Assembly: GCA_021613535.1 (NCBI GenBank) | Contig: CP075493.1 | Location: forward strand, 14,756,001-14,820,000 | Length of the DNA stretch: 64,000 bases | Reading direction: 5' to 3' | Origin: Adineta vaga | Lineage: Eukaryota; Animalia; Rotifera | Part shown: positions 5,218 through 28,472 of the stretch, in pieces | Position numbering within the stretch: the first letter of the stretch is position 1 | Layout: the number at the start of each line of letters is the position of its first letter | Notes under the pieces: model-generated | The model's input: the letters and a program-made list of their open reading frames with translations, nothing else | Databases searched by the model: none | What the model was told of the DNA's origin: nothing | Program-made: the position numbers and the translations under genes

Positions 5218-6111
5218 ATGCGCGTCTTCGTAACAGGTGCCGCTGGCTTCATCGGTCGTGCCGTCGTTCAAGAACTTCTTAACAATGGTCATCAAGTGCT
5301 TGGTCTCGCTCGTAGTGATGCATCTGTCGAGATTATCACTAAAGCCGGTGCAGAACCTCATCAGGGAGACTTGGAAGATATCGAGAGCCTTAAGAGTGGT
5401 GCAAGAATTGCTGATGGTGTCATTCACCTGGCCTTCATCCACGACTTCAGCGACTATGCAAAAGCCGCAGCGGTCGATAGAGCGGCCATTGAAGCTATGG
5501 GGGAAGTGATGGCTGGCACAGGAAAGCCACTCGTCATCGCTTCTGGCACGATGATTGTGGTCAAGGGAAAACTCGCGACAGAGGATACCGAACCTGACCG
5601 AAGCTCACCCTTTGCCGAACGTGCGCGGTCTGCAGATTTGGTCTACACACTGTCAAAGGAAAAGAAAATACGCGGTTCGGTGATCCGACTGCCACCTACG
5701 GTCCACGGCGCAGAAGATAAAGGATTTATTCCCATGTTGATCAATGCAGCACGTCAAAAAGGCTTTGTCACTTATGTCGGTGATGGTTCAGCTCGATGGC
5801 CCACCGTTCATCGATTAGATGCTGCGGTTCTATTCCGTCTCGCATTGGAAAAAGGCACCGCTGGTGCGACCTACCAAGCCGTTGCTGAACAAGGCGTACC
5901 GACCAAAGACATCATGACTGTCATCGGCAAACATCTCCGACTGCCTGTCGAAGCTAAACCTTTGAACGAAGCTGTCGAGGCTATTGGTTTCTTAGCGCAT
6001 GTAGTCGGTTCGGACAATCCCACCTCAAGTGAGAAGACCCAGAAAGAACTGGGATGGCACCCCACTCAACCTAAATTGCTTGCCGACATGGAAGCGAACT
6101 ATTTCTCTTAG
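5218..6111 (+). CDS. NAD-dependent epimerase/dehydratase (atypical SDR), intronless, fungal/bacterial type
   Basis: MRVFVTGAAGFIG Rossmann motif, VIHLAFIHDF, RLPPTVHG, WPTVHRLDAA, LGWHP. Visibly more GC-rich than its flanks. Confidence 0.92.
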   Translation: MRVFVTGAAGFIGRAVVQELLNNGHQVLGLARSDASVEIITKAGAEPHQGDLEDIESLKSGARIADGVIHLAFIHDFSDYAKAAAVDRAAIEAMGEVMAGTGKPLVIASGTMIVVKGKLATEDTEPDRSSPFAERARSADLVYTLSKEKKIRGSVIRLPPTVHGAEDKGFIPMLINAARQKGFVTYVGDGSARWPTVHRLDAAVLFRLALEKGTAGATYQAVAEQGVPTKDIMTVIGKHLRLPVEAKPLNEAVEAIGFLAHVVGSDNPTSSEKTQKELGWHPTQPKLLADMEANYFS

Positions 6112-6939
6112 GAGATGAAATCGAAATATTCCTCATGAAGAAGAATGCTTTTATGTACTGACGTTGACAATTTTTTAGCACAGAAAAAAATACGTGTGAA
6201 ATATAAGTTCTACTATGAATCGGCTTTTGTTCAGTAGCACGATCAAATCATTTTTAGAGTTTAGAAATTCTTATATCATTGTTTTCTTTATTGCATATCT
6301 CATAATGTGTTTAACAAATTCAAGGCGATGTCGCCTACCGATGGGTGACACTATAGTTTAGCGAGAAATTGTATAGAAAAGAACTTTCTTTTGCTTCTTT
6401 CTTCAGCAAGAGGTAGAATATAAGATGTCATTTCTCCTGTCTTTATTACTTTATTTGAATCCTTTATTCTATATAGTACAATGCTTATGATTAAAATATT
6501 GGAGACAAAAACAGTTTATCACAGTCAGAATATAATGACACTAAAAAAGGACTCCGCACTTTATAATGAATGCAAAATCTTTTTTTAATTTTGTATGATC
6601 AAGGTTTTGCCCGAAACCCTTTTGAAAATTCGATTAAAAATGGTTTCGTTGAAATTCATTTTTTGCATTTCAGTCCAAGGAATTTGTATTCAACACGTCC
6701 TGAAATACAATATCATGTTATTTGAACTGCTCTACTTCGCTGTTTTCTTTGACTTTCGTCAAAAAATTGCAATAAATGTTAACGATGATAATTAATAAAA
6801 TTTTGAGAGTCAGGGTAGTTAACATTGAATAACATTCAATGGCATGAGTTTTTATGTAAATCATTAAATAATGACGATAGATCTTATACTAATTTGTAAT
6901 GGAAAGTAAAGAAACTTGTTTGTGAATTCTATTTGATGT

Positions 6940-7013
6940 GCTCTTGTAGCGTAAGTGGTAAATGCATCCGGCCGTTAACTGGAAGACAGGTGGTTCGAGT
7001 CCACTCGGGAACG
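6940..7013 (+). tRNA. tRNA-Asn(GTT), copy 1 (acceptor-stem mismatch; possibly a pseudogene)
   Basis: Cloverleaf with anticodon arm TCCGG-CCGTTAA-CTGGA and T-loop TTCGAGT, followed by a T-run terminator. Confidence 0.75.
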
Positions 7014-7531
7014 TCTTTTTTTCTTTTTTACATAATTATATTTGACATTATGATGAAAATGATTGCAATATTGCGAAAGTTTTCATCAGTTATTATCAAA
7101 TAATATCTCTGATCTCTCGATAAATAATATCAGTTATGTAGAACTGATAACGATTATATGACTTTCGTTTTTCTGTGTGTGTAAAAGTGCAAGATATGAT
7201 CTTGAATGGACGATGGTTCCAGACAAATTTATCTATTATTTAAAGAGTTAACTTAATTTTTCTGTAAAACCTTCATCTAATCATTTTAAATTACAGCAAA
7301 TTATTTTTCATTCTTCTGTTATGCTCCAAACAGACTAAAAAGGTTAATACTGAGTTAACCAGTACGATTCGTATTGCTATGAAAAACACCAATCATCTTT
7401 CTTAATTTAGCATTCATTTTTCTATCACATGATTGATCATCATTTAGACAATGGTCCACTAGACATTGTATTGTGTAATATGTATGTCTATTTTTTTCAT
7501 AAAATAATTCGCTTTCATTACTTTTTACGAA

Positions 7532-9450: not shown

Positions 9451-9794
9451 ATTAGTGCTATCGAAGTTTTTCTACTTCAAAAATGGTTGAAATCGAAATA
9501 TGAAGCAAATATTCAAGAACTTGTTGAGAAATAACACAAAACATTGAAATTGCAAAGAAGGTGAAAATGTCAAAAATGATATTCTTCAATTAAGATAAAA
9601 AATACTTTGTTTTACAAATAAAGTACAATAAATGAAATATCACCATCGAAATGTTCAAGAGGTCGATAATCATCTCCATTTGCATTTTTTGAAATAAATG
9701 TTGATCCACTGACTGATGTAGATACTTTACCTTTGAGTTTAGTGACATAGATATGTTGAATAGTTGAACTTGTTGTATCAACAATTACATATTT
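9451..9794. repeat. Direct repeat A, right copy
   Basis: Matches 1799..2266 and continues into the full GNAT pseudogene. Confidence 0.92.
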
Positions 9795-10540: not shown

Positions 10541-10788
10541 TTGTTTTCAATAGTTTCTTATTCATCTTATTGTCAATGAAAACAATGAAATAAATAATCG
10601 AAAAAAAAACGATAGTGATTTATACAGAAAAATCCAATCATGTCCGCATCCAAAAGTAATAGTATTTCATATACAAATAATAATTGTAGTCCCATTATTT
10701 GTTCATCATGTGGTCAGTCTATTAATATTGCATCCAATGATGAAGAATATTACAAATGTTAACAATGTGCATATCATCATGTTTGTAA
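10541..10788. repeat. Direct repeat C, left copy (truncated 5' end of the ZZ-finger gene)
   Basis: Matches 18487..18856; carries a CAA>TAA change and lacks a 122-bp segment. Confidence 0.92.
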
Positions 10789-11613
10789 CAAAATCAACAA
10801 ATGATTTGTTTCATTAAATGATTTTTTAATTATTACAATATAAACAAGAGGAATTTAGTCGACGTTTTAAAAGAAGACGGTGAGACGCCGAGTTCGGGTA
10901 GACATATTTTTACAGCTGAGAAATCATCTGGCATAGTTCTGAACACAGAGGACAAATCATCGCGGAAGACGGTGGAAGAGAATTAAGGAAAGCAGTGCCT
11001 TCGAACCTCATCTAGCCAAAATTATTTCTTTATGTTCTTTTATTTCTCTTCAAATATTTGCATTTTGCTGATTAACAAAAAAATGATGTGGAGACAAAAC
11101 AATTTTCTTTTCTATGTGAATTCCACCAAAGTGTGCGTCTGTTCTCTTATGGCTGAAACCCATAGATACACACTATGCACGTAGATTTCAATATGACTGC
11201 ATTTGAATGACTTTCTTGCGAAAGAACGAGGAAAAAATGTTTTTTTTCCCAGTTGACTGAAGAAATATATTAGTCGTCTCTAAGAACGTTGTGTAACGGG
11301 AGAATACATTCAAATAGCATTTCTTATATAAAATCTCACCCTTCGAATTAACCTTTCTATTCCACGATTTTAAAGATTACCGAGCCAGTTCCGCGTGACT
11401 CCTGAATTAGTAGTAATTCTAGATTTCTTTCGTAGAATCACACCCTTCTGTTTCACCCACATGCCTTTTGTTGTATATCGAGACTAATTGAGTGATCGAA
11501 TTGCTGTAGCTGGTCGAAATCAGTTCTGAAATGTTTAACATCACAGAATAGGATTATTACTCACTCTTCGACACTCGTAATCTATTTCTTTAGCGTTAAT
11601 ACAATTCATAAAC

Positions 11614-14600
11614 ATGGTGACAATATGGTGCGTAAAAGTGACATGTCTACGACGACTTGTGGGAAATGACGAGTTAGCGAAGGAGTTTGGTATTGAAGAA
11701 AATAGAGCTACCGTCCCACGGAATCAATCAGGACCGAATTTTTTTGCTTGGATAAACAAGTTTGCGGATGAAAATGAAGCTCATAAGTTTGCTAAAAAAT
11801 GGGATAGAAAAAATATTTGTTCCTATACAATTACATGCAAGTCAGTAGAACGCAACGATAATGGTAGAGCTCGATCGGTATCTATAGCGACTTCTCGATC
11901 ATCTATGACTCAAAATCAAGCTTTTACGAATTGGCTTCCCGCCGCTAATCAAGTTACAACAATGTCTATGCTAGGTAAGTTTCATCTAGAAATTCTGGAT
12001 TAAAATCTTATGAGAAAAGTGAATAATTTTTTCTCTATCGTTCTTTCTTTTCCTTCATATTCGATACTGTATAAATTATAGTATCGTAGTAGGATTACCG
12101 GAGCCTCGCCAATATTACTTGAGTTCCTTGAAAATAGGTGTTTAGGTGAGCTGCGAATACGTTCTATCATGCTCATTGTGAAATGCGTAGGTTATCATAG
12201 TAGAACAATTTCTTTTCTCTATTTGAAGACGATACCACATCAAAAGCTAAACATAAAGAAAGAGATGATGACCATGGTGATAATCGTAACGTCACAACAA
12301 TAAATTCTATTACTTTACGTCAATCGCGCCAAGATAAACATTCCTTCCAATCTGATAGTAAACCTATCATTGGTATGGCAACCGTTGCTACTAAAGGTAT
12401 GCGTAGTTCGAGTACGTTTGGTGGAGCTTCGAAACCATATGTATACCCTCGAGATGATACTTGTTCAGATGATGTGAACGACACTTCAACATGTAAAGAT
12501 GGTTTTAACTGCGAAAATTTCGATTGTAAAGCTAGCCATCCGATCGGTAGAACAAAAAAATGTCAATATGCAGCAAAATGCACAAACGCGGAATGCAAAT
12601 GTTTACATCCTTCGTTACCTACGGCCGCTTGTACAGACTTTAATCATTGTCAAGTGTGGCAATGTCCTGCATCACATTCAGAAAATCGACCGAAAAATTG
12701 TTTGTATGGTCCACATTGTTATATCGCTACATGTACTTATCTGCATCCATCTAGCCGAAAAGTATGTTTCATTGGTGTTGATTGTAAGGATCTTGATTGT
12801 TCCGAGAACCATCCACCCGGACGATCGTCGATATGTGATCAAGGATTCGATTGCGGTAATTATTATTGTCACAATCTTCATCCTGCTACTTGGAATCCGT
12901 GTGAAGATGGTAGAGAATGCGTCAATCCTATTTGTCCATATACCTCACATCCGCCAGATCGAATAATGTCTACTATCTTAAGGTTCTCTGAGAGAAGAAG
13001 ACCAATGAAAGCTTTGAAACTATTGAAGACAAAAGAACAGCGTCAAGAGGATAGAAAAAAAGCAAACTTGCCAATACTTGCTTGTGAAAAGGATTTTTGT
13101 CAACGATTAGAAACAGAACGCGTCTTGGTCGTTACAGCTGAAACAGGCAGTGGAAAAAGTACACAACTACCTCAATATGCGGCTGAATATTTCCATGGGC
13201 TTGTCGTCTGCACTCAACCGAGAGCAATTGCAGCTATCTCGCTTGCTCGTCGTGTAGCTGATGAGTATGATGGAACATCGGTAGGAGAATCGGTTGGCTA
13301 CGAGGTGGGTCGTAGAGGCGCAAATATGACCACCAATAAAGTACCTGGGAAAAGCATTGTTTTTATGACTGATGCTGCTTTGATACAAAAAAGTCAACTA
13401 AACCGTCAATTGGATGATGTGCGCGTATTGATTATTGACGAATCTCATGAACGATCATTAAATACAGATATTGTCTTGGGTTTAGCGAAACTATTATTAT
13501 GTGAGCGAACATCTGATTTCTATGTTGTTATTGCGTCAGCGACAATTATGCCCGATCAGTTTCTTCGATTCTTTGATAGGAATGATAACCAAGCGCTTAA
13601 CGTTCCCGGTCGAACTTACCATGTTGAAATTGAATATATTCCAAAACCAGATGATTCAGATGAAGACCATGTTGTATCAACTTTACTGAAAGTCCATAGT
13701 CAGCATGAAGGACATACTTTAGTATTTCTGCCGGGTCAACAGGAGATTGAGCAAGCCATCAAACTTTTCTCAGCTAACATACCAAACAACTGTGTTGCAT
13801 TACCATTGCATGGAGCTCTTTCGCCCGAAGAACAAACTGGAGTCCTTCAGTTTGATGAAAACCCATCTGAACAGCGACGTATGGTGATTTTTTGTACCAA
13901 TATTGCCGAAACATCGTTAACGATAAAAAATACTCGCTTGGTTATTGATTCTGGATTAGCAAAAGAGGCTCGCTTTGATCCTAGACGTCGTTTCACTATT
14001 ATCGAGACAGTTCGTATTTCCAAATCGTCTGCAACCCAACGTACTGGTCGAGCAGGTCGGACAGATAAAGGCCATTGCATTCGTTTATACAAAGAAGATG
14101 AATTACAACGTCTGAATATTGAGCCAGAAATTCATCGCTCATCACTTGACTTGATTGTTCTACAACTCCTTCGCTTGGAACTAGATCCTATGAAGTTTCC
14201 TTTTATGGACTCACCAAATGACGCAGATCTACATGCATCATTGACACTGCTAAATCAACTTTCCTGTATCCAAGAAAATAAAAGTCTTAGTCGGCGTGGT
14301 GAACTTTTCAATGAACTCGGACTTGATCCACGTTTGAGTGCGTTTCTAGTAGATAGTTATCTGGAGCACGGTCCTATCATTGAATTGACTGCGACTATCG
14401 TCGCTATCTTAACAGCACCGGGATCAATTTTTATCATGGGTGGTGCGACCAAGGAAATTAAGCAAGCGGCTCTTGGACGCGTTTCACTAGGCGCGCAGCA
14501 GTACGAAAGCGATCTAATCTATTTTAATACAATTTACAATCAATGGAAGAAAATAGGTGTAATAGATCCCAAATCTCGTATCTGTGTAACATGTCAAAAA

Positions 14601-17600
14601 GTCGTCAAACGTGAGCAAGCATGTCGTTTGTGTCGTCTTAAATATAGCTGTGATAATAACTTGAACAGTAAAATTCTCTACAATGTAGAAAACTCATCTG
14701 ATGTTTTTATTAAAATATTTAAAAACCAACGTTGGGAGCTCAATTCTGGCTTTTTAACAAACGTGATCGAAAGCGATTTTATCAGTAAATATTTGTTAAA
14801 ACATTTTCCTGAACATTATGGATATCTTCTCGTACCACACCTACCGAATGAAGGTGCTTACTTACAAAAAAATGATCTTCGAGTACGCATTACTAGAACG
14901 AGTGTTTTTGTTCAACGTCGAACAAATAAAGTTCATTTTATTGCTATGTCAGTCACTCAATTGCCTAACAAAGAGTATGTAATTGAGCGTCTGCATCCAG
15001 TTAATCCACCAAATGATATATATATTCCGATTTTGTCACAATTAGAAATAATTGAGAATGTCGGCTGGGAATGGAACACTGAGATACGAAAGAAAATGAA
15101 AACTTATGGCACAACACCATGGACTAAATGGCTTGTCTATGAATATGATCAGAATCAATGTAAATTCATTGTATGGGGTGATACAAATACAAAGAATGAT
15201 CTTTGTCACAACTTAAATACCGTGACACAGTCAACTCGCGACGACTTATTAGATCGTAATCGTTCTCTCGATTGTGGACCTATTCGAGGATTATTCAGCA
15301 GCGGTCTCACGTGTATACGTATCGATAATATGCATCATATGACGAGTTCCAATAATCGAATTGATTTACAACATGTTCCATGTAGAACATTGGAAGAATT
15401 TCATGAGTGGTTCGAATCAAAAGCAGGTTGTACTCGTCAGTTTATTCGTGATCATAATTTTCGGTCATGTGTTGAACCTGTATCAGACAGTAATGCTTAT
15501 GAAGCACCACAGTTTTTTGTCGTTCTTAATTCTGATGATTTTTTTAATCGGGTCATGGATCAAATACCAAAGAATTACATAAATCCATGTCCAACAGGTG
15601 TATCCAAAAGTGTCCATATGTCTGAAAAAACCACTTGGGGTCGACAACTAATATTGAAAGTCAAAGATGTCATACCGATGACTGAAGAACAAGTAAAAAC
15701 AATCCTCGGCAACTCGATTATTAGTTGCAAACGACAGGGTAAGAAAGGATTATCTGTCCTACATTTAACAAATTTGCCAGCAAAGATTGAAGAACAACAC
15801 ATAAAAACACTTCTCGGAAAAGATATCATTCCTAGACAGATTACTATTCTTCCTTCTGATTCAAATAATCGTGAAATTGGTAGCACTACTGTTCGTATTA
15901 CTTTTGATGATCCACAGTTGTGTGATAAAGTCTTTCATTCCCTTCAATCTAGACTATGTACGGGAACACACATGATAACTATTTTTTCGAGCAAGAAACA
16001 AAATTACATAAAAATTCCTGTTAGTCCTACCTGTAACAAACTGAAGATGGAACCTTCAGAATTTCTAATTACTACAAAGAGTCGACAAGATGCACATGAT
16101 ATCTACTCCAAATCATGGCCTAATTGGACGGTGCATAGTTCCTCATGTGTCACTGTAACACATTTGGAGCTACATCCAGATCTCAAAAATTCGATCTCAT
16201 ACATATGCAGCAAGTTTAAGGTTCATGAAGAATACCATCCTCTACTACAGAGAGGTGATTATCAAGCTGCGCGTTATTATTTTACAGGCAATATTCCATC
16301 TGCGACTGCTCTTGCTGCTTCTATGCTCTATCAAATAACATCGCCAATCGTAATTAAATTAAGTGATAATCGACAAAGATATTTCTTCAAAGAGCTATTT
16401 AAACAAAATCTTATGCAAACTTGGGCAAAAGAACTCAAATTAGTATGCGAAGAGAAGGATAAATATGGAGCCATTGTGCAAATTTGTGGACCACAAATTG
16501 AGCAGGGTCAATTGATGCGTCGTATTGGTGACTATTCAGATCAGTTCGATGATCGATTTATTGTTTACGATCTGAATACTACCACTGTGGGCTATTTTGG
16601 TCGTCAAAAAGCTGCTGATGTGAGATTACAAGAGATTGATATTAAATGTAATTCTGAGGGATGTAGTGTAACTCTTGATCGTCGAACAAGTTCCATTATT
16701 TTTTATGCACAACCAAATGCAACAAAGGAGGCAATTCATCGTTGTAAGACAGATGTAGAACAATTGTTGAAGTTAGTAACGAACATTGTTGATGATGATG
16801 ATGATTCAGACATATCTGATACAATCTACCAACAAGATTGCACGCGTGAATGCGCTTTTTGTAAACACAAAAAAATTGCTACGCGAACATTTCGTATTTG
16901 TGGCCATGCCTACTGTCGATGTGCAGTAAGCACATTGAAAAAACTGCCTTTGACATGTCCTAAATGTCAATTAAAAATTCATATTCAAGACATAATAGAA
17001 ATTTTTTGCAGTAATCGTGGAGACTTAATTCAATTATGCAAAACTGCGATCCAAAATTATCTTGAATCGACTGCAAATCCAACCGATGAAGATCTCTTGT
17101 TCTGTCCAAATGAATCTTGTGAAGGTTTAATTATACGTAGCAAAGGTTATCAAATATGTTATACCTGTGGACACAGTGTATGTGGAAAGTGTAATTTAAT
17201 CGACGACGAATGGCATGAAAATCGTACATGTGTGGAACGTGAACAATTTCAAAAAGAGAAAACAGAATTTTTCCCACAACTTTTCAAGGCTGTTAAAGAA
17301 TTCGTAAAAGACAATTGGCCACCGTTATTACCGAATGTCCTTGATATCATATGTAATCCATATATTGAACAACCTAATTATCCATCTTTGACACGGTTTT
17401 ATGCTGGTGTCCATGAGCTAGGACAACAGCCACCACCTGATCTGAAACAAGGATTTTTTGCTTTTCATGGTACATCACCCAAAGCAGTTGAATCCATCTG
17501 TCATTCTGGTTTTGATCCAAGTAGACGTTCGGGACAAGCATACGGACCTGGAGAATATTTTGGTGTGACAGCAGCTGTTTCGCATGGCTATTCAAAAAAA

Positions 17601-18338
17601 GATAATCCATCAACTGATAATTATATGATGATAGTTGCATACCTTTTGAAATCCGATCGAGTAAAAACCTTCAAGGATTTTTGTTATGTAGTAAATAATC
17701 CAATAGATTGGAAAACTTCATTTAACTTACCTGTAGCTTTGATTACATATGGAAAAAAGCCTACAACTGGTCCTTCTTTCTCTCTCATTCTCAAACCAAC
17801 TTTAGCAAGTCAACTTCAAGAAACTACTCGGTCTATTACATGGAAGTCACCTTTTCGGTGGTATTGGCGCAAAGATAATGGAAATTTTGAGCCATACAAC
17901 GATAAGATTAATCAAATATTAGAAGAGTTCTATGAAAAATGGAAAATTGAAAAAGGACCATCATCCGTCGTAACGCCACCGCTTATTCGGTATATTGATG
18001 ATCTTCCACAAACCTATCGAATTGACTTTGTAACTAATCGACAAACTCATGAAAGAACTCACTTTGTACGTCCTATTGAACGAAAACGTTCCACCGAATC
18101 AACATTCGAAACCAAAATGCGATGGTTTTATCGAAATGAATACAAAATATGGACTCTTTATGAATCTATGGTACAAAAACAAATTGACGATGCTTATCAA
18201 TCCTATATTTCATGTAACGGTCCAAGCAAACTAAATGTTCAATTTCCTGGTCGGCCAGAACAGTATCAAATCAATTTTGTAATGGGCACACAAAAAAATA
18301 CGATCTCGAATGAGACACGAGAGATTAAACATGAATAA
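11614..18338 (+). CDS. Multidomain RRM-7xCCCH-DExH helicase/HA2-RRM-RING-IBR-PARP(ART)-2xWWE protein, ~2156 aa; join(11614..11974,12229..18338)
   Basis: Phase-1 intron 11975..12228 (GTAAGT...GAAG) joins the RRM-like exon in frame. Motifs: AETGSGKST, TQPR, DESH, SAT, TNIAETS, QRTGRAGR; CAFC..CGH..CPKC; CPNESC..CYTC..CGKC..H..C; FHGT..YGPGEYF; two WWE-like repeats (WYW..FEPY; WFY..WTLY). Confidence 0.92.
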
Positions 18339-18440
18339 ATAAACTTTTAATCAATAAAATCACCTAATAAATGATTGTCAAATAATACTGTTTATCTTAA
18401 TAACATAGATACTTTAACAATTAGAAAGTTCGAAAACCAT

Positions 18441-18489
18441 CTTGAATGGTGAGGATGAGGATGTAAAGATTCCATCGACTCACACCTTG
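18441..18489. repeat. Degenerate telomere-like hairpin at the cassette junction
   Basis: CTTGAATGGTGAGGATGAGG...ACTCACACCTTG abuts the start of the right copy of repeat C. Confidence 0.6.
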
Positions 18490-18856
18490 TTTTAAACAGT
18501 TTCTTGTTCCTCTTATTGTCAATGAAAACAATGAAATAAATAATCGTGCTTATAAAAATCATAGTGAGATTGTTTTCACATATCAATAATGACGGGAATT
18601 TCCATCGATTACTCATTGTATGCGCAATCAACCGATACTAACCAATTATTACCTTAAATAAATAATCGAAAAAAAAACGATAGTAATTTATACAGAAAAA
18701 TCCAATCATGTCCGCATCCAAAAGTAATACTATTTCATATACAAATAATAATTGTAGTCCCATTATTTGTTCATCATGTGGTCAGTCTATTAATATTGCA
18801 TCAAATGATGAAGAATATTACAAATGTCAACAATGTGCACATCATCATGTTTGTAA
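18487..18856. repeat. Direct repeat C, right copy
   Basis: Matches 10541..10788 and continues into the full ZZ gene. Confidence 0.92.
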
Positions 18857-19758
18857 AAAATGTTTACAATCACCAGTGAATAAAGAAAGTAATCATCAGT
18901 TTAAAAAGGTAAATTGTTGGATTTCATTGAAAATGAAATTATTTATTTTTGATTTCTGTTTCAAAGATTTTACCGACAATTAGTAAAGTACAAGATTCAA
19001 TGACTAGTACCAACTCACAACCCCTCTCTATATTCAGAAACAATGACTATTTATTATTCTATATCACATACTGTGATCATTGCTTGAATGTTCTCTATGT
19101 TAATAAGCAAGTAATATATACATGTGATCAATGTCCTAGTTTTGTTGCCTGTGAAAAATGTGTCAATCTCGTAACAACTCAACATCCAGTACAACATAGA
19201 TTTATAAAGAGTAAGATATCTAATAATGATGTTGGTCGACACTTTGGAATAACATGCGACGGTTGTAAGGAAGGAAATATACGAAATTTAAGATATCAAT
19301 GCGAACAATGTGAATAAAGTTATGATTTATGCTATAAATGTTTTCGACAATCAAAGAAAATTCATAATAACTTACATACGTTTAAATTTCTACAGGATCC
19401 ATTAATTCGTTCAAGTAATCGTCAAGTATTAGCTCGACGTACAGTAGATTGGTTTGCTCGTCAAAAGACTTCGAATGTTAACCAACGGGAACCCATAACA
19501 GGATGGACAAAAAATGATGCGGAACAAATTATTCAAATAGAAAATCAATTTCTTCAAGATTACAAACGAACTAAACAACAAATTGAGGAAATAGAATGGT
19601 ATGGGGAAAAACAGAGACAAGAACATGAAATTAGAATGGCTCAAATGATTGCTGATTCACAATTACGAATGTTGAGAATGGATATAGATTCTTCTAATAA
19701 AATGTTCGATAGACTCAGCGATGCTGCATCTGCAAGTTATTATCGATATCATTACTAA
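18708..19758 (+). pseudogene. Triple ZZ-type zinc-finger protein with a premature stop; join(18708..18908,18967..19758)
   Basis: HFGITCDGC..RYQCEQCE*SYDLCYKC is a ZZ consensus interrupted by TAA at 19315; two more CxxC-CxxC-CxxC-H units upstream; 58-bp intron. Confidence 0.8.
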
Positions 19759-20241
19759 TATTAAACTTGATATTAATAACAAAATCCATGTTTTAATTAA
19801 AATATTAACCCTAATATTTTTATAAATAGCTCCATTTATGTATTTATTCCTCCTTTTATAAACATGAAAATTGGAAAACAGAAGTTTAATAAATGATTGC
19901 ATTAAAACAAAAGAAACATTTTTATTATCAAAACAAATTGTACATTTTCCTTCCTCGAAAATCTTGAATTTTGTTAAAACTAAATTAAAATTTGTAATAC
20001 ATACATCACGTATATTAACAATGAGAATCAATAAAATTTCGAGATTTCTTCGTTTGGAAAACATGATCAAAGATAGTTAACATCGGATAGCTTTCAATGA
20101 TATGAGTTTTTATCTTAATCAAATATGCTTTCCTGTAAATCATTAATAATCTCGACGAAACATATTTGAAAGCACAATTTCATTGTATAGTATACTCATA
20201 ATGAAAAGTAAAGAAAGTTGTTTGTGAATTCTATTTGATGT

Positions 20242-20315
20242 GCTCTTGTAGCGTAAGTGGTAAATGCATCCGGCCGTTAACCGGAAGACAGGTGGTTCAA
20301 GTCCACTCGGGAGCG
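20242..20315 (+). tRNA. tRNA-Asn(GTT), copy 2
   Basis: Acceptor stem GCTCTTG/CGGGAGC, anticodon arm TCCGG-CCGTTAA-CCGGA, T-arm GGTGG-TTCAAGT-CCACT, T-run terminator. Confidence 0.82.
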
Positions 20316-20883
20316 TCTTTTTTTCTTTTTTACATAATTATATTTGACATTATGATGAAAATGATTGCAATATTGCGAAAGTTTTCATCAGCTATTATCA
20401 AATAATATATCTATGATTCATAATTTTTTTCCTTCCAGATAGTTACAAATAAAAACAAAAACTGCGCATTCAACGATTGATCAAAGATTCATTGTTTTGC
20501 TTAAAAACGTATGGCAAATATATTTTCTAGTTCTGCTACAAGAAAATGCAATTTATCATTTTTTGCGAACATATTATTTCATTCTTCTGATTATCTCTGA
20601 CCTCTCGAGAAATAATGTCAGTTATGTGAAACTGATAATAATTAAAAAACGTTAGTTATCACATTTATGCAACGATCATACACTATCAAGTAAGTAAAGT
20701 ACGCCATATTTTCTTCTTCGACTTTAATTGGTTTGATAAAAACAAAAGAGGAGGTTTCATTTTCAAAATTTATTGTTTTACAGATGAATTTAATAACATA
20801 ATTCGACTCTTATTAGTTGCTTATATATTTAGATAAACAACGTCTGTGTTCCTGCATACAAGAAAGTTATTCAAAAAGTGCTA

Positions 20884-26872: not shown

Positions 26873-28472
26873 TTAATATCCAAATGAAATGCCAAGATTA
26901 TCAAAAGCTAATTCAGTTCCATTTTGACTCCATCCAGAAACTGGAAATCCAATTGACGTTGCAAACGAAATTGTATCTATATTAGTGCAAATACCACATG
27001 AAAATGTGGTCGAGTTTATTGGATTGAGTACACGGCTATTGCTCAATCTTAGTGCGCCTGATCGATATAATGCGATGGATACTGTGAGATTATCTCGCCA
27101 AGCAGAAATCCATGTGATCCGATCAAAGGAAAAACTCGAACCATTCGCCGATGCTATCGTAAAATTAATGCCTCCTGGATTATATGCAACATAGGGTGAG
27201 GCAGGTAAAAATTTCAGAAAACCGCTTGTTGGCATTGATGACCCATTCAAATAGTTGACATTGGTCCAAGTAAGACCATTATATCCATTTGGAACAACTC
27301 CCGATGACGATGATTGACTAGGAATATCATCGAATGTAACAATTGTTGAAGAAACACCTAATAAAATTTAAGAAAACCGAAGAAGTTATGTATCATGAAT
27401 CTGAAAACAATGTTACTTACCAGGTTTTGTGGTTGTCGTTGTACTAGTTGTAGCAGATGTACTAGTGGTTTCAGTGGTTGTAGTAGAAGTGGCAGACGTA
27501 GTACTAGTAGTGGCCGACGTGGTACTAGTGGTGGCAGACGTGGTACTAGTTGTGGCAGACGTGGTACTAGTGGTGGCAGAAGTTGTACTGGTAGTGGCAG
27601 ACGTTGTACTAGTAGTGGCCGACGTGGTACTAGTGGTGGCAGAAGTTGTACTGGTAGTGGCAGACGTTGTACTAGTAGTGGCCGACGTGGTACTAGTGGT
27701 GGCAGACGTGGTACTAGTTGTGGCAGATGTCGTACTTGTAGTGGCAGTAGTTGTGGTAGTAGTAGCGCTGGTTGTACTAGTGGTAACGCTGGTAGTAGTA
27801 GTGGCCGATGTCGAAGTAGTAGATGTACTTGTCGTCGTATTCATATTGACTACAATAGATTTTCATAGAACTGAAATATCTTTCATTTTGATTTTTGACA
27901 CATACTCGTTACTGCTGCTGCATTTGTATTTGTGTCTACAATTCAAATAAAATCATCTAATTTCGTGTTTATTAAAAGAAAATATTTAGATGCACAGTAC
28001 ACTAACTCATATTGTATTGAAAAAAAAGGATTCATTGATATGAAATGTATAGTTTTTTATTCGAGTTTTAGTTCTCAAAAAACTATAGTAACCAAGTATT
28101 ATATCGCTACTGTTATGAAATCGCACGTCCTTTACTGATTTCTAATTTACAGAACGAAGAAAAAATAAATACCTGATTTTCTTAATCCCAACACAAGGCC
28201 TGTAATCAATGCAGCAATTGAGAGAACAACAATTAACCCCACAAAAGAACAGCAACAACAACGATGATTTCTGAAATATGATTAATAGATAAACAAAACA
28301 AATTAAAATTATAAAGATGTTCTCACTGAAACCAGGTACAGAGTTGACGTTTGCCAGCATCACGGTTCTCTGAACCTTTGTCGGATTTGATATGCGAAGT
28401 TGGTGTCCACGCTCGATATTTGTCTTCTGATGTCACAATTCTTGGAGCACTGCTTATTTTATCAGAAATCAT
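26873..28472 (-). CDS. Type II membrane protein with Thr/Ser mucin stalk and a C-terminal bacterial-like beta domain (5 exons)
   Basis: Four GT-AG introns join in frame the N-terminus, a TM segment (VGLIVVLSIAALITGLVLG), (TTSTTSA)n and TIVTFDDIP..VPNGYNGLTW..YVAYN..SAWRDNL. Confidence 0.75.
27485..27745. repeat. 21-bp coding tandem repeat (TTSTTSA), about 12 units
   Basis: Units such as GTGGCAGACGTGGTACTAGTA repeated head to tail. Confidence 0.95.

Follow-up and report, generated by a model that had tools for sequence, protein, structure and literature searches.

A bdelloid rotifer protein family that joins a DEAH helicase and a RING1-IBR pair to a PARP-type domain and tandem WWE domains, with apparent descent from helicase-RBR ubiquitin ligases

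I4U23_004878 is a gene of the bdelloid rotifer Adineta vaga that lies in a stretch of 64,000 nucleotides (nt) of the chromosome-scale contig C1 (CP075493.1, positions 14,756,001-14,820,000), hereafter called the window; positions below are those of the window unless residues are named. Its predicted product carries, on one chain and in this order, an RRM-like domain, seven CCCH fingers, a DEAH helicase with ratchet and OB domains, RRM-like and KH-like modules, a RING1-IBR pair, a PARP-type ADP-ribosyltransferase (ART) domain and a tandem WWE. Profile comparisons show that, as far as sequence similarity can tell, the family of this protein derives from DEAH11/12-type helicase-RBR ubiquitin ligases in which RING2 has been replaced by the ART domain and the WWE pair, and that the bdelloid members have gained two elements N-terminal to the helicase, an RRM-like domain and a CCCH array of the Nab2 type. 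Taken as a whole, we lean with modest confidence towards a helicase-RBR descendant that couples RNA recognition, ADP-ribosylation and ubiquitin and that acts in RNA surveillance or defence. The domains had been listed by an earlier sequence-only reading of this DNA, and each of them was recovered at the position it had proposed (Table 1).

Relation to DEAH11/12-type helicase-RBR proteins

The greater part of the protein is encoded by an unbroken open reading frame (ORF) of 5964 nt, 12375..18338 on the forward strand, which was taken from the list of ORFs of the window and is 1987 residues long. Residues 219-748 of this ORF match Prp43, DHX15, Prp22 and HrpA with E values of 1e-82 to 1e-70, and the alignments to PDB structures of Prp43, Prp22 and DHX8 reach residue 748, the Pfam HA2_C match being weak. 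Helicase motifs I, II, III, V and VI (GSGKST, DE[A/S]H, SAT, TNIAETS and QRxGRAGR) are invariant or nearly so in 49 relatives, motif II of I4U23_004878 reading DESH. The enzyme thus has both the motifs and the winged helix, ratchet and OB domains by which DEAH/RHA helicases are recognized.

Pfam finds nothing in the 740 residues that separate the helicase core from the RING, and its KH_DEAH11 models give no direct match to them either. In the AlphaFold2 model of this middle region, which has a predicted local distance difference test score (pLDDT) of 83, an OB domain is followed by modules of beta-alpha-beta-beta-alpha-beta topology. The OB domain corresponds to a beta-rich stretch at model residues 85-163, and its counterpart in a DEAH11-like protein is, according to hhalign, the OB_NTP_bind region. 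What the sequence-only reading had called a second RRM, at about 15747-15992, falls inside the run of ferredoxin-like modules, which Foldseek likens to the tandem RRMs of U2AF65, Prp24, PABP and Sxl. As a side observation, the CxxC...CxxC knuckle between the ratchet and the OB domain (residues ~905-925, window ~14580-14640) is kept in the helicase-PARP family and is represented by a single Cys in DEAH11-like relatives.

The origin of this arrangement becomes apparent from a comparison with an alignment of 33 helicase-RBR proteins of the DEAH11/12-like kind, drawn from plants, molluscs and cnidarians, members of a subfamily that has been named "Helicase" or "Plant I" RBR (PMC2904391). In one such reference protein the order of Pfam domains is helicase, OB, RRM, KH_DEAH11_2nd, KH_DEAH11, IBR and IBR_1. 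The middle region aligns to the 33 proteins with an hhalign probability of 99.4 (E 1.2e-21, 647 columns), colinearly from the OB domain to the second KH-like module, and the RING1-IBR segment aligns with a probability of 99 (E 7e-18). The likeness to plant DEAH11/12 proteins, which had been proposed from the domain list, therefore reflects true homology: the DEAH helicase, the OB domain, the RRM-like module, the two KH-like modules, RING1 and IBR stand in the same order in both and are homologous. The match of the RING1-IBR segment ends just after the IBR, where DEAH11-like proteins carry RING2, and this indicates that the family represents a helicase-RBR lineage whose catalytic finger was exchanged for PARP-WWE-WWE. 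The differences lie at the two ends, since I4U23_004878 lacks RING2 (Rcat) and has the PARP domain and two WWE domains after the IBR, and since the bdelloid copies bear the N-terminal RRM-like domain and the CCCH array. A canonical DEAH11-like helicase-RBR protein was also sought in A. vaga, and only generic RBR matches surfaced. To our knowledge, no function has been established for the DEAH11/12 family.

Table 1. Features of I4U23_004878 and of its surroundings in the window
Feature	Position	Strand	Basis and remarks
Exon 1	11614..11974	+	Start codon; RRM-like domain of ~80 residues (~11614-11853), then low-complexity linker; matches N-terminus of I4U23_004878
Sole intron	11975..12228	+	254 nt, GT..AG, phase 1; spliced RNA contigs
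Exon 2	12229..18338	+	6110 nt; TAA stop 18336-18338; AATAAA signal 18334-18339
Seven tandem CCCH fingers (Nab2 type)	12492..12950	+	Regular-expression positions
DEAH/RHA helicase (RecA1, RecA2, winged helix, ratchet HA2)	13029..14618	+	PDB matches, motifs, Pfam DEAD and Helicase_C
CxxC...CxxC four-cysteine knuckle, then OB-fold domain	14580..15053	+	Family consensus, AlphaFold2 model, hhalign to OB_NTP_bind
String of ferredoxin-like modules (two RRM-like, two KH_DEAH11-like)	15054..16787	+	AlphaFold2, Foldseek, hhalign
RING1 (C3HC4)	16851..16967	+	C1662, C1665, C1678, H1680, C1683, C1685, C1697 and C1700 invariant in 49 relatives
IBR (C6HC)	17103..17231	+	Eight ligands invariant in 49 relatives; Pfam IBR 29.7 bits
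PARP-type ART domain (predicted H-Y-Phe type, short acceptor-loop region)	17256..17762	+	Pfam PARP 36 bits; FHGT at 17463
Tandem WWE	WWE1 17847-18089, WWE2 18117-18335	+	Pfam WWE twice, E 3e-21
Upstream flanking repeat copy	10541..10792	+	Decayed copy of the 5' part (promoter, exon 1) of the ZZ-finger gene that lies downstream (duplicated part 10588-10792), in-frame TAA
Downstream flanking repeat copy	18487..18860	+	Intact start of the ZZ-finger gene, ATG 18708; split by a 110-nt insert
Repeat pair with tRNA genes	6897-7110 / 20199-20412		214 nt, 97%; among the direct repeats that frame the region; each holds a tRNA-Asn(GTT), 6939-7015 and 20241-20317
Repeat pair	1799-2266 / 9451-9794		93-94%; the 3' end of ORF 1088-1882 (SBF-like transporter) falls within the first copy

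The gene and its transcript

The ORF product is identical over its full length (100%) to the NCBI protein I4U23_004878, a "hypothetical protein" of Adineta vaga of 2156 residues, and the database model consists of this product and 169 residues upstream of it. The database protein was used as the joined-exon product; the exons were otherwise handled one by one. The gene has two exons and a single 254-nt intron, so that its description as nearly intronless was accurate.

RNA contigs assembled from four public runs (X1, X2, X10 and X11, from three studies) were compared with positions 11500-17499; the evidence on the transcript thus consists of assembled contigs, not of single molecules. In run X11 a contig of 770 nt covers 11592-11972 and 12227-12614, leaving out 254 nt with GT..AG ends, and in run X10 two allelic contigs begin at 12227, preceded by the final letters of exon 1. 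Runs X1 and X2 cover the exons, with zero depth within the intron and upstream of the gene, and coverage is confined to the exons in all four runs. Overlapping contigs of run X10 (12327-13349, 13329-14368 and 14339-14453) lead into a 3972-nt contig that starts at 14424, at the boundary of the ratchet and OB domains, and extends about 900 nt past 17499; this overhang would take it through the RING, the IBR, the PARP domain and both WWE domains. RNA contigs therefore overlap from 12227 to beyond 17499, and transcripts spanning the helicase and the PARP domain, on which the sequence-only reading depended, are borne out. A further contig, present in X1 and X10, touches 12449-12469 and 17445-17462 and was considered as a splice form; it has 34 other letters between the two matches and unrelated sequence on either side, and we read it as a chance or paralogue match or as another gene sharing short words. 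No Rfam match was found in the gene or in its intron.

About 1% of sites differ between the RNA runs and the reference, with no insertions or deletions, and of the 40 best-supported allelic or strain differences 24 leave the amino acid unchanged, which random changes would be expected to do in 21.5% of cases. The excess of synonymous differences and the absence of insertions and deletions imply that the reading frame is under purifying selection. I4U23_004878 is thus an intact, spliced and transcribed gene that is subject to purifying selection. In draft genomes a long model with many domains can turn out to be a fusion, and one could imagine that a helicase gene and a neighbouring PARP-WWE gene have been read together or that the locus is a pseudogene. 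No specific support for such an artefact was found, and it is hardly credible in view of the 5964 nt without a stop, the 3972-nt RNA contig that runs from 14424 past the start of the PARP domain with overlapping contigs back to the splice junction, the same colinear architecture in 45-49 relatives including Hydra and protists, and the mostly synonymous variation.

RING1 and IBR in the absence of RING2

The RING1-IBR segment of the family matches the RING1-IBR of HOIP/RNF31 with an E value of 2e-6, a separate scan of this segment gives a Pfam IBR match above the cut-off, and all 16 of the zinc ligands of the two domains are invariant in the 49 relatives. RING1 and IBR, two constituents of a helicase-RBR protein, are hence both present. 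The third is not: after the IBR there is no RING2/Rcat with a catalytic Cys and no cluster of cysteines, and the chain continues instead with a long helix and then the ART domain, at the place where DEAH11-like proteins have the RING2 motif CPxC...GCNH.xC..C. The RING and the IBR that had been read from the sequence, from 16851 and 17103, are thus real, but they constitute only one half of an RBR. It follows from the absence of RING2 that I4U23_004878 is not a complete RBR ligase and that ordinary RBR chemistry cannot be assumed for it.

A separate observation concerns ubiquitin-conjugating enzymes (E2). In six-frame searches the A. vaga genome contains about 120 matches to their UQ_con family, many of them complete and intronless and some of them clustered (e.g., at ~19.3-20.0 Mb of contig C3 and at ~5.84-5.85 Mb of contig C1), i.e., a large E2 repertoire.

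The PARP-type domain and the tandem WWE

The nearest solved relatives of the ART domain by sequence are PARP12 (8e-7), ZAP (3e-4) and PARP10 (2e-3), and the Pfam PARP match is above its cut-off. The final 517 residues were modelled with AlphaFold2 on the basis of 45 relatives (mean pLDDT 86.9), and in VIA-align the ART domain of this model superimposes on PARP15 with a Z score of 14.9 and a root-mean-square deviation of 3.1 A over 148 residues, with similar values for PARP14, PARP10, PARP12 and tankyrase 2. The domain accordingly has the fold of the diphtheria-toxin-like (H-Y-E) clade. All 45 family members compared, which range from rotifers to metamonads, have H1867, Y1897, S1905 and Y1908, and 44 of them have G1868; the His and Tyr that bind nicotinamide adenine dinucleotide (NAD+) and the Ser and Tyr that stack on the nicotinamide are thereby all in place, and the FHGT motif that had been noticed at 17463 is confirmed. 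The strand that bears the catalytic Glu in PARP1 reads F-C-Y-V-V-[N/D] in the helicase-PARP family; the third position of the triad appears to be Phe1938 (38 of 45 members), with no acidic residue kept nearby, so that a conserved catalytic Glu, which the elongation of poly-ADP-ribose chains requires, is apparently lacking. The predicted site fits the H-Y-hydrophobic, mono-ART type. Cys1939, next to Phe1938, is conserved in 44 of 45 members and could join ADP-ribose or ubiquitin chemistry or, equally, be a buried structural residue. It is known that enzymes of the PARP10/11/15 class can ADP-ribosylate RNA ends, an activity that would suit an RNA-bound ART domain.

The WWE pair is Deltex-like and is situated C-terminal to the ART domain. 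Its profile matches the tandem WWE of DTX1 at 3e-13 and the WWE of TRIP12 at 5e-8, and Foldseek finds it to resemble the tandem WWEs of DTX1 and Drosophila Deltex and WWE1-2 of ZAP. The closest match, the tandem WWE of DTX1, has been solved with ADP/ATP bound. Of the residues that form the ligand pocket, the Gln and Arg in WWE1 do not vary among the 45 relatives, and the Gln and Asn in WWE2 are conserved to at least 90%. The model, VIA-align and Foldseek are in agreement on an ART/WWE fold of the C-terminus, as the sequence-only reading had supposed.

That reading had also compared the protein with the antiviral ZAP/PARP12 group, and here its proposal stands in part. The ART domain is indeed most like those of PARP12 and ZAP, the triad apparently has a hydrophobic third residue, a trait of mono-ARTs, and CCCH fingers, WWE and ART domains occur on one chain in both. 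However, the fingers are spaced as in Nab2, the WWE pair follows the ART domain and is of the Deltex kind, and the acceptor loop is much shorter; neither the finger type nor the WWE-before-ART order that characterizes the ZAP/PARP12 group was found. ZAP has lost the His of the triad, which is kept in I4U23_004878. The helicase and the RING1-IBR are a further difference: in mammals, ZAP is served by the DEAH helicase DHX30 and the RING ligase TRIM25, which are separate proteins, and in the rotifer such parts belong to the same chain. The resemblance to Deltex and DTX3L-PARP9 goes beyond the WWE pair, for which DTX1 is the best match in both sequence and fold, because in these systems too a RING, an ADP-ribose reader and an ART domain act together. 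Unlike them, I4U23_004878 has no DTC domain in Pfam scans, and so lacks the combination of tandem WWE, RING and DTC that defines Deltex; its RING is of the RBR RING1 type and is followed by an IBR, and its ART domain is on the same chain and not on a partner.

The enzymatic sites of I4U23_004878 are likely competent, as predicted from the invariant motifs, the NAD pocket and the zinc ligands. It might alternatively be argued that the protein is mostly a scaffold, in which the ART domain is a non-catalytic module that binds NAD or ADP-ribose as in ZAP, RING1-IBR is a structural relic and chemistry is confined to the helicase and the RNA-binding parts. The loss of RING2, the very short acceptor-loop region, the missing catalytic Glu and the precedent of ZAP, whose inactive PARP domain is among the closest matches in sequence and fold, are all compatible with such a scaffold. 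We nevertheless hold it to be improbable, because ZAP lost its triad His while the corresponding His, together with the two Tyr and the Ser, is present here without exception and the Gly with a single one, and because the invariance of 16 zinc ligands over very deep divergences is more than would be expected of a relic.

The N-terminal RRM-like domain and CCCH fingers

The domain encoded by exon 1 has no Pfam match when it is scanned alone. It is kept in 16 bdelloid paralogues, and a profile of these matches RRMs of nucleolin (E 2e-6) and Prp24 (E 1e-3), in line with the RRM-like character that had been ascribed to it. The CCCH fingers number seven and occupy exactly the interval in which they had been noticed. 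Six of them have the spacing C-x5-C-x4-C-x3-H and the seventh has x4 before the His. In phmmer searches the sole PDB relatives of the array are fingers 5-7 of yeast Nab2 (2lhn and 5l2l, E 4e-8), and in Pfam the array gives weak matches to zf-CCCH_tandem and Nab2-zf4. By their spacing (tandem C-x5-C-x4-6-C-x3-H) and relatives the seven fingers are of the Nab2/ZC3H14 type, which in Nab2 binds poly(A), and not of the ZAP type. Nab2 is a poly(A) RNA-binding protein (PMC2924000, PMC5388407) and likewise carries seven fingers (PMC5388407). The number of fingers, their cysteine spacing and the direct match to fingers 5-7 are shared; the difference is that Nab2 has no enzymatic domains and I4U23_004878 has several.

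Distribution of the family

Searches with the whole protein and with its C-terminus returned about 70 clusters at 90% identity, mostly from bdelloids (Adineta, Rotaria and Didymodactylos). Single or few copies were found in Hydra vulgaris, in the oomycete Lagenidium, in the metamonads Chilomastix and Carpediemonas, in the amoebozoan Pelomyxa, in "Eukaryota sp. TZLM1-RC" and in several transcriptomes. According to Pfam, the order helicase...IBR-PARP-WWE-WWE is present in Hydra, Lagenidium and one transcriptome protein, the last having RRMs in place of the fingers. When 1.84 billion representatives were searched exhaustively with a profile, 256 proteins reached E<=1e-30, and in many of these the part from RING1 through WWE2 forms a single C-terminal block of a chain of 1900-2800 residues. 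The family is, to judge from these matches, old, scattered and eukaryotic, with its domain order kept from metamonads to animals.

The A. vaga genome (100.8 Mb in six contigs) holds six loci of the family. The paralogue nearest to I4U23_004878 is about 50% identical to it, a close homoeologue is missing from this degenerate tetraploid genome, and the best matches in A. steineri and Rotaria are only 53-55% identical. In a FastTree phylogeny of an FFT-NS-2 alignment, rooted on DEAH11-like proteins and with long branches and deep nodes left unresolved, all bdelloid sequences form one clade with three subclades. Each subclade contains both Adineta and Rotaria, which means that the bdelloid expansion is old. 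The neighbours of the bdelloid clade in this tree are sequences of Pelomyxa and unnamed protists and not those of Hydra, in a part of the tree where the nodes are unreliable.

The architecture is therefore not unique to one gene, given the 256 proteins and the six A. vaga loci, but no description of it was found in the literature searched. A full-text search that combined DEAH or helicase, PARP, WWE, IBR or RING, and rotifer or bdelloid returned no account of the combined architecture, and the statement of the sequence-only reading that it knew of no characterized protein with both the helicase-RBR and the CCCH-WWE-PARP parts has held in this literature. Neither of two broad surveys of the evolution of PARPs names a helicase, DEAD or IBR partner (PMC2964712, PMC4245714), and a survey of bdelloid DNA-repair genes lists only PARP1 (PMC6264785).

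A possible mechanism and its alternatives

The domains suggest the following scheme. The fingers and the RRM-like and KH-like modules would select single-stranded RNA, probably A-rich or polyadenylated, and the DEAH motor may then translocate on the selected RNA or remodel the ribonucleoprotein (RNP). The ART domain would use NAD+ to mono-ADP-ribosylate the protein itself, RNA-bound proteins or RNA ends, and the WWE pair would hold the ADP-ribose mark. RING1-IBR would bring a charged E2, so that ubiquitin could be placed on or beside the ADP-ribosylated target. For this hand-over from ADP-ribose to ubiquitin the Deltex family provides a precedent: its ligases use ADP-ribose, whether linked to a protein or to a nucleic acid, as an acceptor of ubiquitin (PMC7615817, PMC10810221, PMC11467253). 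The domain logic and the expansion of the family in bdelloids, with its fast divergence, suggest RNA surveillance or defence against viruses or transposons as the likely role.

Several points weigh against this scheme and the role proposed with it. Nab2-type fingers fit housekeeping metabolism of poly(A) RNA equally well. Transfer of ubiquitin in the manner usual for RBR ligases is impossible without RING2, and we know of no RBR-type RING1 that activates an E2-ubiquitin conjugate alone. For a predicted complex of RING1-IBR (residues 1650-1800) and a UBE2D-like E2 that an intronless A. vaga gene encodes (L018:1483-1953), the score was 0.13 (mark 0.34), which speaks neither for nor against docking. 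The placing of Phe1938 as the third residue of the triad is an inferred sequence register and not a residue-level superposition: it was derived from the strand pattern and from the distance to the chain end in structural alignments, as the HMMER alignments to PARP12 stop before this residue and the fold tools give ranges only. Finally, only about 10 residues separate the preceding strand of the ART domain from the strand of Phe1938, where PARP12 has a long acceptor (ARTT) loop, and with so short a segment the targets of the ART domain are not predictable.

The first of these points leads to an alternative in which the protein is no immune effector but serves the ordinary metabolism of mRNA or poly(A) RNA as a housekeeping factor (quality control of 3' ends, remodelling of RNPs or decay) and in which ADP-ribosylation and recruitment of ubiquitin regulate ordinary RNPs. 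Besides the type of the fingers, this is consistent with a helicase closest to the Prp43/DHX15/Prp22 class, with the age of a family that is present in free-living protists of several supergroups, and with RNA contigs in all four runs, which give no sign that a challenge is needed for expression. On the other hand, the distribution is patchy and most eukaryotes are without the family, which would be unusual for a core RNA factor; moreover, bdelloids have many diverged paralogues, the counterparts in A. steineri and Rotaria are far from identical to I4U23_004878, and the gene lacks a close homoeologue. On balance, we consider a housekeeping function rather unlikely and retain RNA surveillance or defence as the preferred role.

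A bolder version of the chemistry can also be envisaged, in which the PARP domain replaces the lost RING2 in function. Ubiquitin carried by an E2 on RING1-IBR would be discharged directly onto ADP-ribose (or NAD+) held in the adjacent ART or WWE pockets, and a ubiquitin-ADP-ribose mark would thus be written on RNA ends or RNA-bound proteins, to which the helicase and the RNA-binding modules of the chain would direct it. We regard this proposal as a long shot; if it were true, it would represent a route to ADP-ribose-ubiquitin marks that is independent of Deltex and old within eukaryotes.

Whatever their exact chemistry, proteins of this family are of interest for several reasons. A chemical link between ADP-ribosylation and ubiquitination came to light recently, in Deltex, and the antiviral sensing of RNA by vertebrate ZAP relies on separate helicase and RING partners. 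A single chain with RNA binding, an RNA motor, a putatively E2-recruiting half of an RBR, an ART domain with an intact NAD pocket and two predicted ADP-ribose readers is a natural experiment on the cooperation of these activities, and the family shows the later history of an RBR ligase in which an ART domain took the place of the catalytic finger. The last 520 residues, with their confidently predicted fold (pLDDT 87), are small enough for direct biochemistry, and bdelloid biology gains an expanded family of RNA-directed enzymes.

The locus and its neighbours

Comparison of the window with itself by blastn revealed three pairs of short repeats and no long ones. One pair (10541-10792 and 18487-18860; 205 nt at 97% and 60 nt at 93%) brackets I4U23_004878 and occurs in only these two copies genome-wide. 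The sequence-only reading had placed the gene on an inserted cassette. The bracketing itself is real, but the repeats amount to only ~205 and 60 nt, they correspond to the 5' end of the downstream gene, and they have none of the hallmarks of a transposon; at the junctions of I4U23_004878 no transposase, reverse transcriptase, long terminal repeat, terminal inverted repeat or telomeric hexamers were found, and neither an empty site nor a homoeologous locus was found in the A. vaga genome. A local rearrangement or insertion at this locus is plausible.

More broadly, the gene may have reached this locus, or bdelloids in general, by insertion or horizontal transfer, as a recent cassette in the first case and with a protist donor of the bdelloid family in the second, either of which would be compatible with any of the functional readings discussed above. 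The duplicated 5' end of the downstream gene, found around I4U23_004878 and nowhere else in the genome, is what one would expect of such an event, as are the lack of close homoeologues of both I4U23_004878 and the ZZ-finger gene, the single intron, the presence nearby of an intronless GC-richer epimerase gene and of (TGTGGG)2, and the position of the bdelloid clade beside the Pelomyxa/protist group. Yet the junctions are devoid of mobile-element and telomeric signatures, the ~50% identity of the nearest paralogue means that no recent donor copy is in the genome, the empty site is missing, and the long-branched deep nodes of the tree cannot decide the donor. As the three bdelloid subclades predate the split of Adineta and Rotaria, any transfer into bdelloids must have been ancient. 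Arrival by insertion or transfer is thus possible, though we are inclined to doubt it.

The surroundings of the gene contain further features. Directly downstream lies the cysteine-rich ZZ-finger gene (18708-19317 onward), whose next exon holds the Pfam ZZ match and whose best relative elsewhere in the genome is 37% identical. An intronless ORF at 5218-6111 encodes a NAD-dependent epimerase/dehydratase of 297 residues and has a GC content of 41.5% against about 30%; it has the look of a gene gained by horizontal transfer, as is known from bdelloids. A telomere-type hexamer pair, (TGTGGG)2, is found at 2272-2283, directly after the repeat 2045-2266 and beside the segment that bears the epimerase ORF. 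An SBF-like CPA transporter is represented by two adjoining ORFs (223-1882; Pfam SBF_like, E 5e-49), and the repeat 1799-1939, of which a second copy lies at 9451-9591, overlaps its 3' end. Farther along the window, at 27437-27805, a tandem array of a 21-nt unit (~18 copies, 78% match) lies inside overlapping ORFs and would encode a protein repeat of seven residues.

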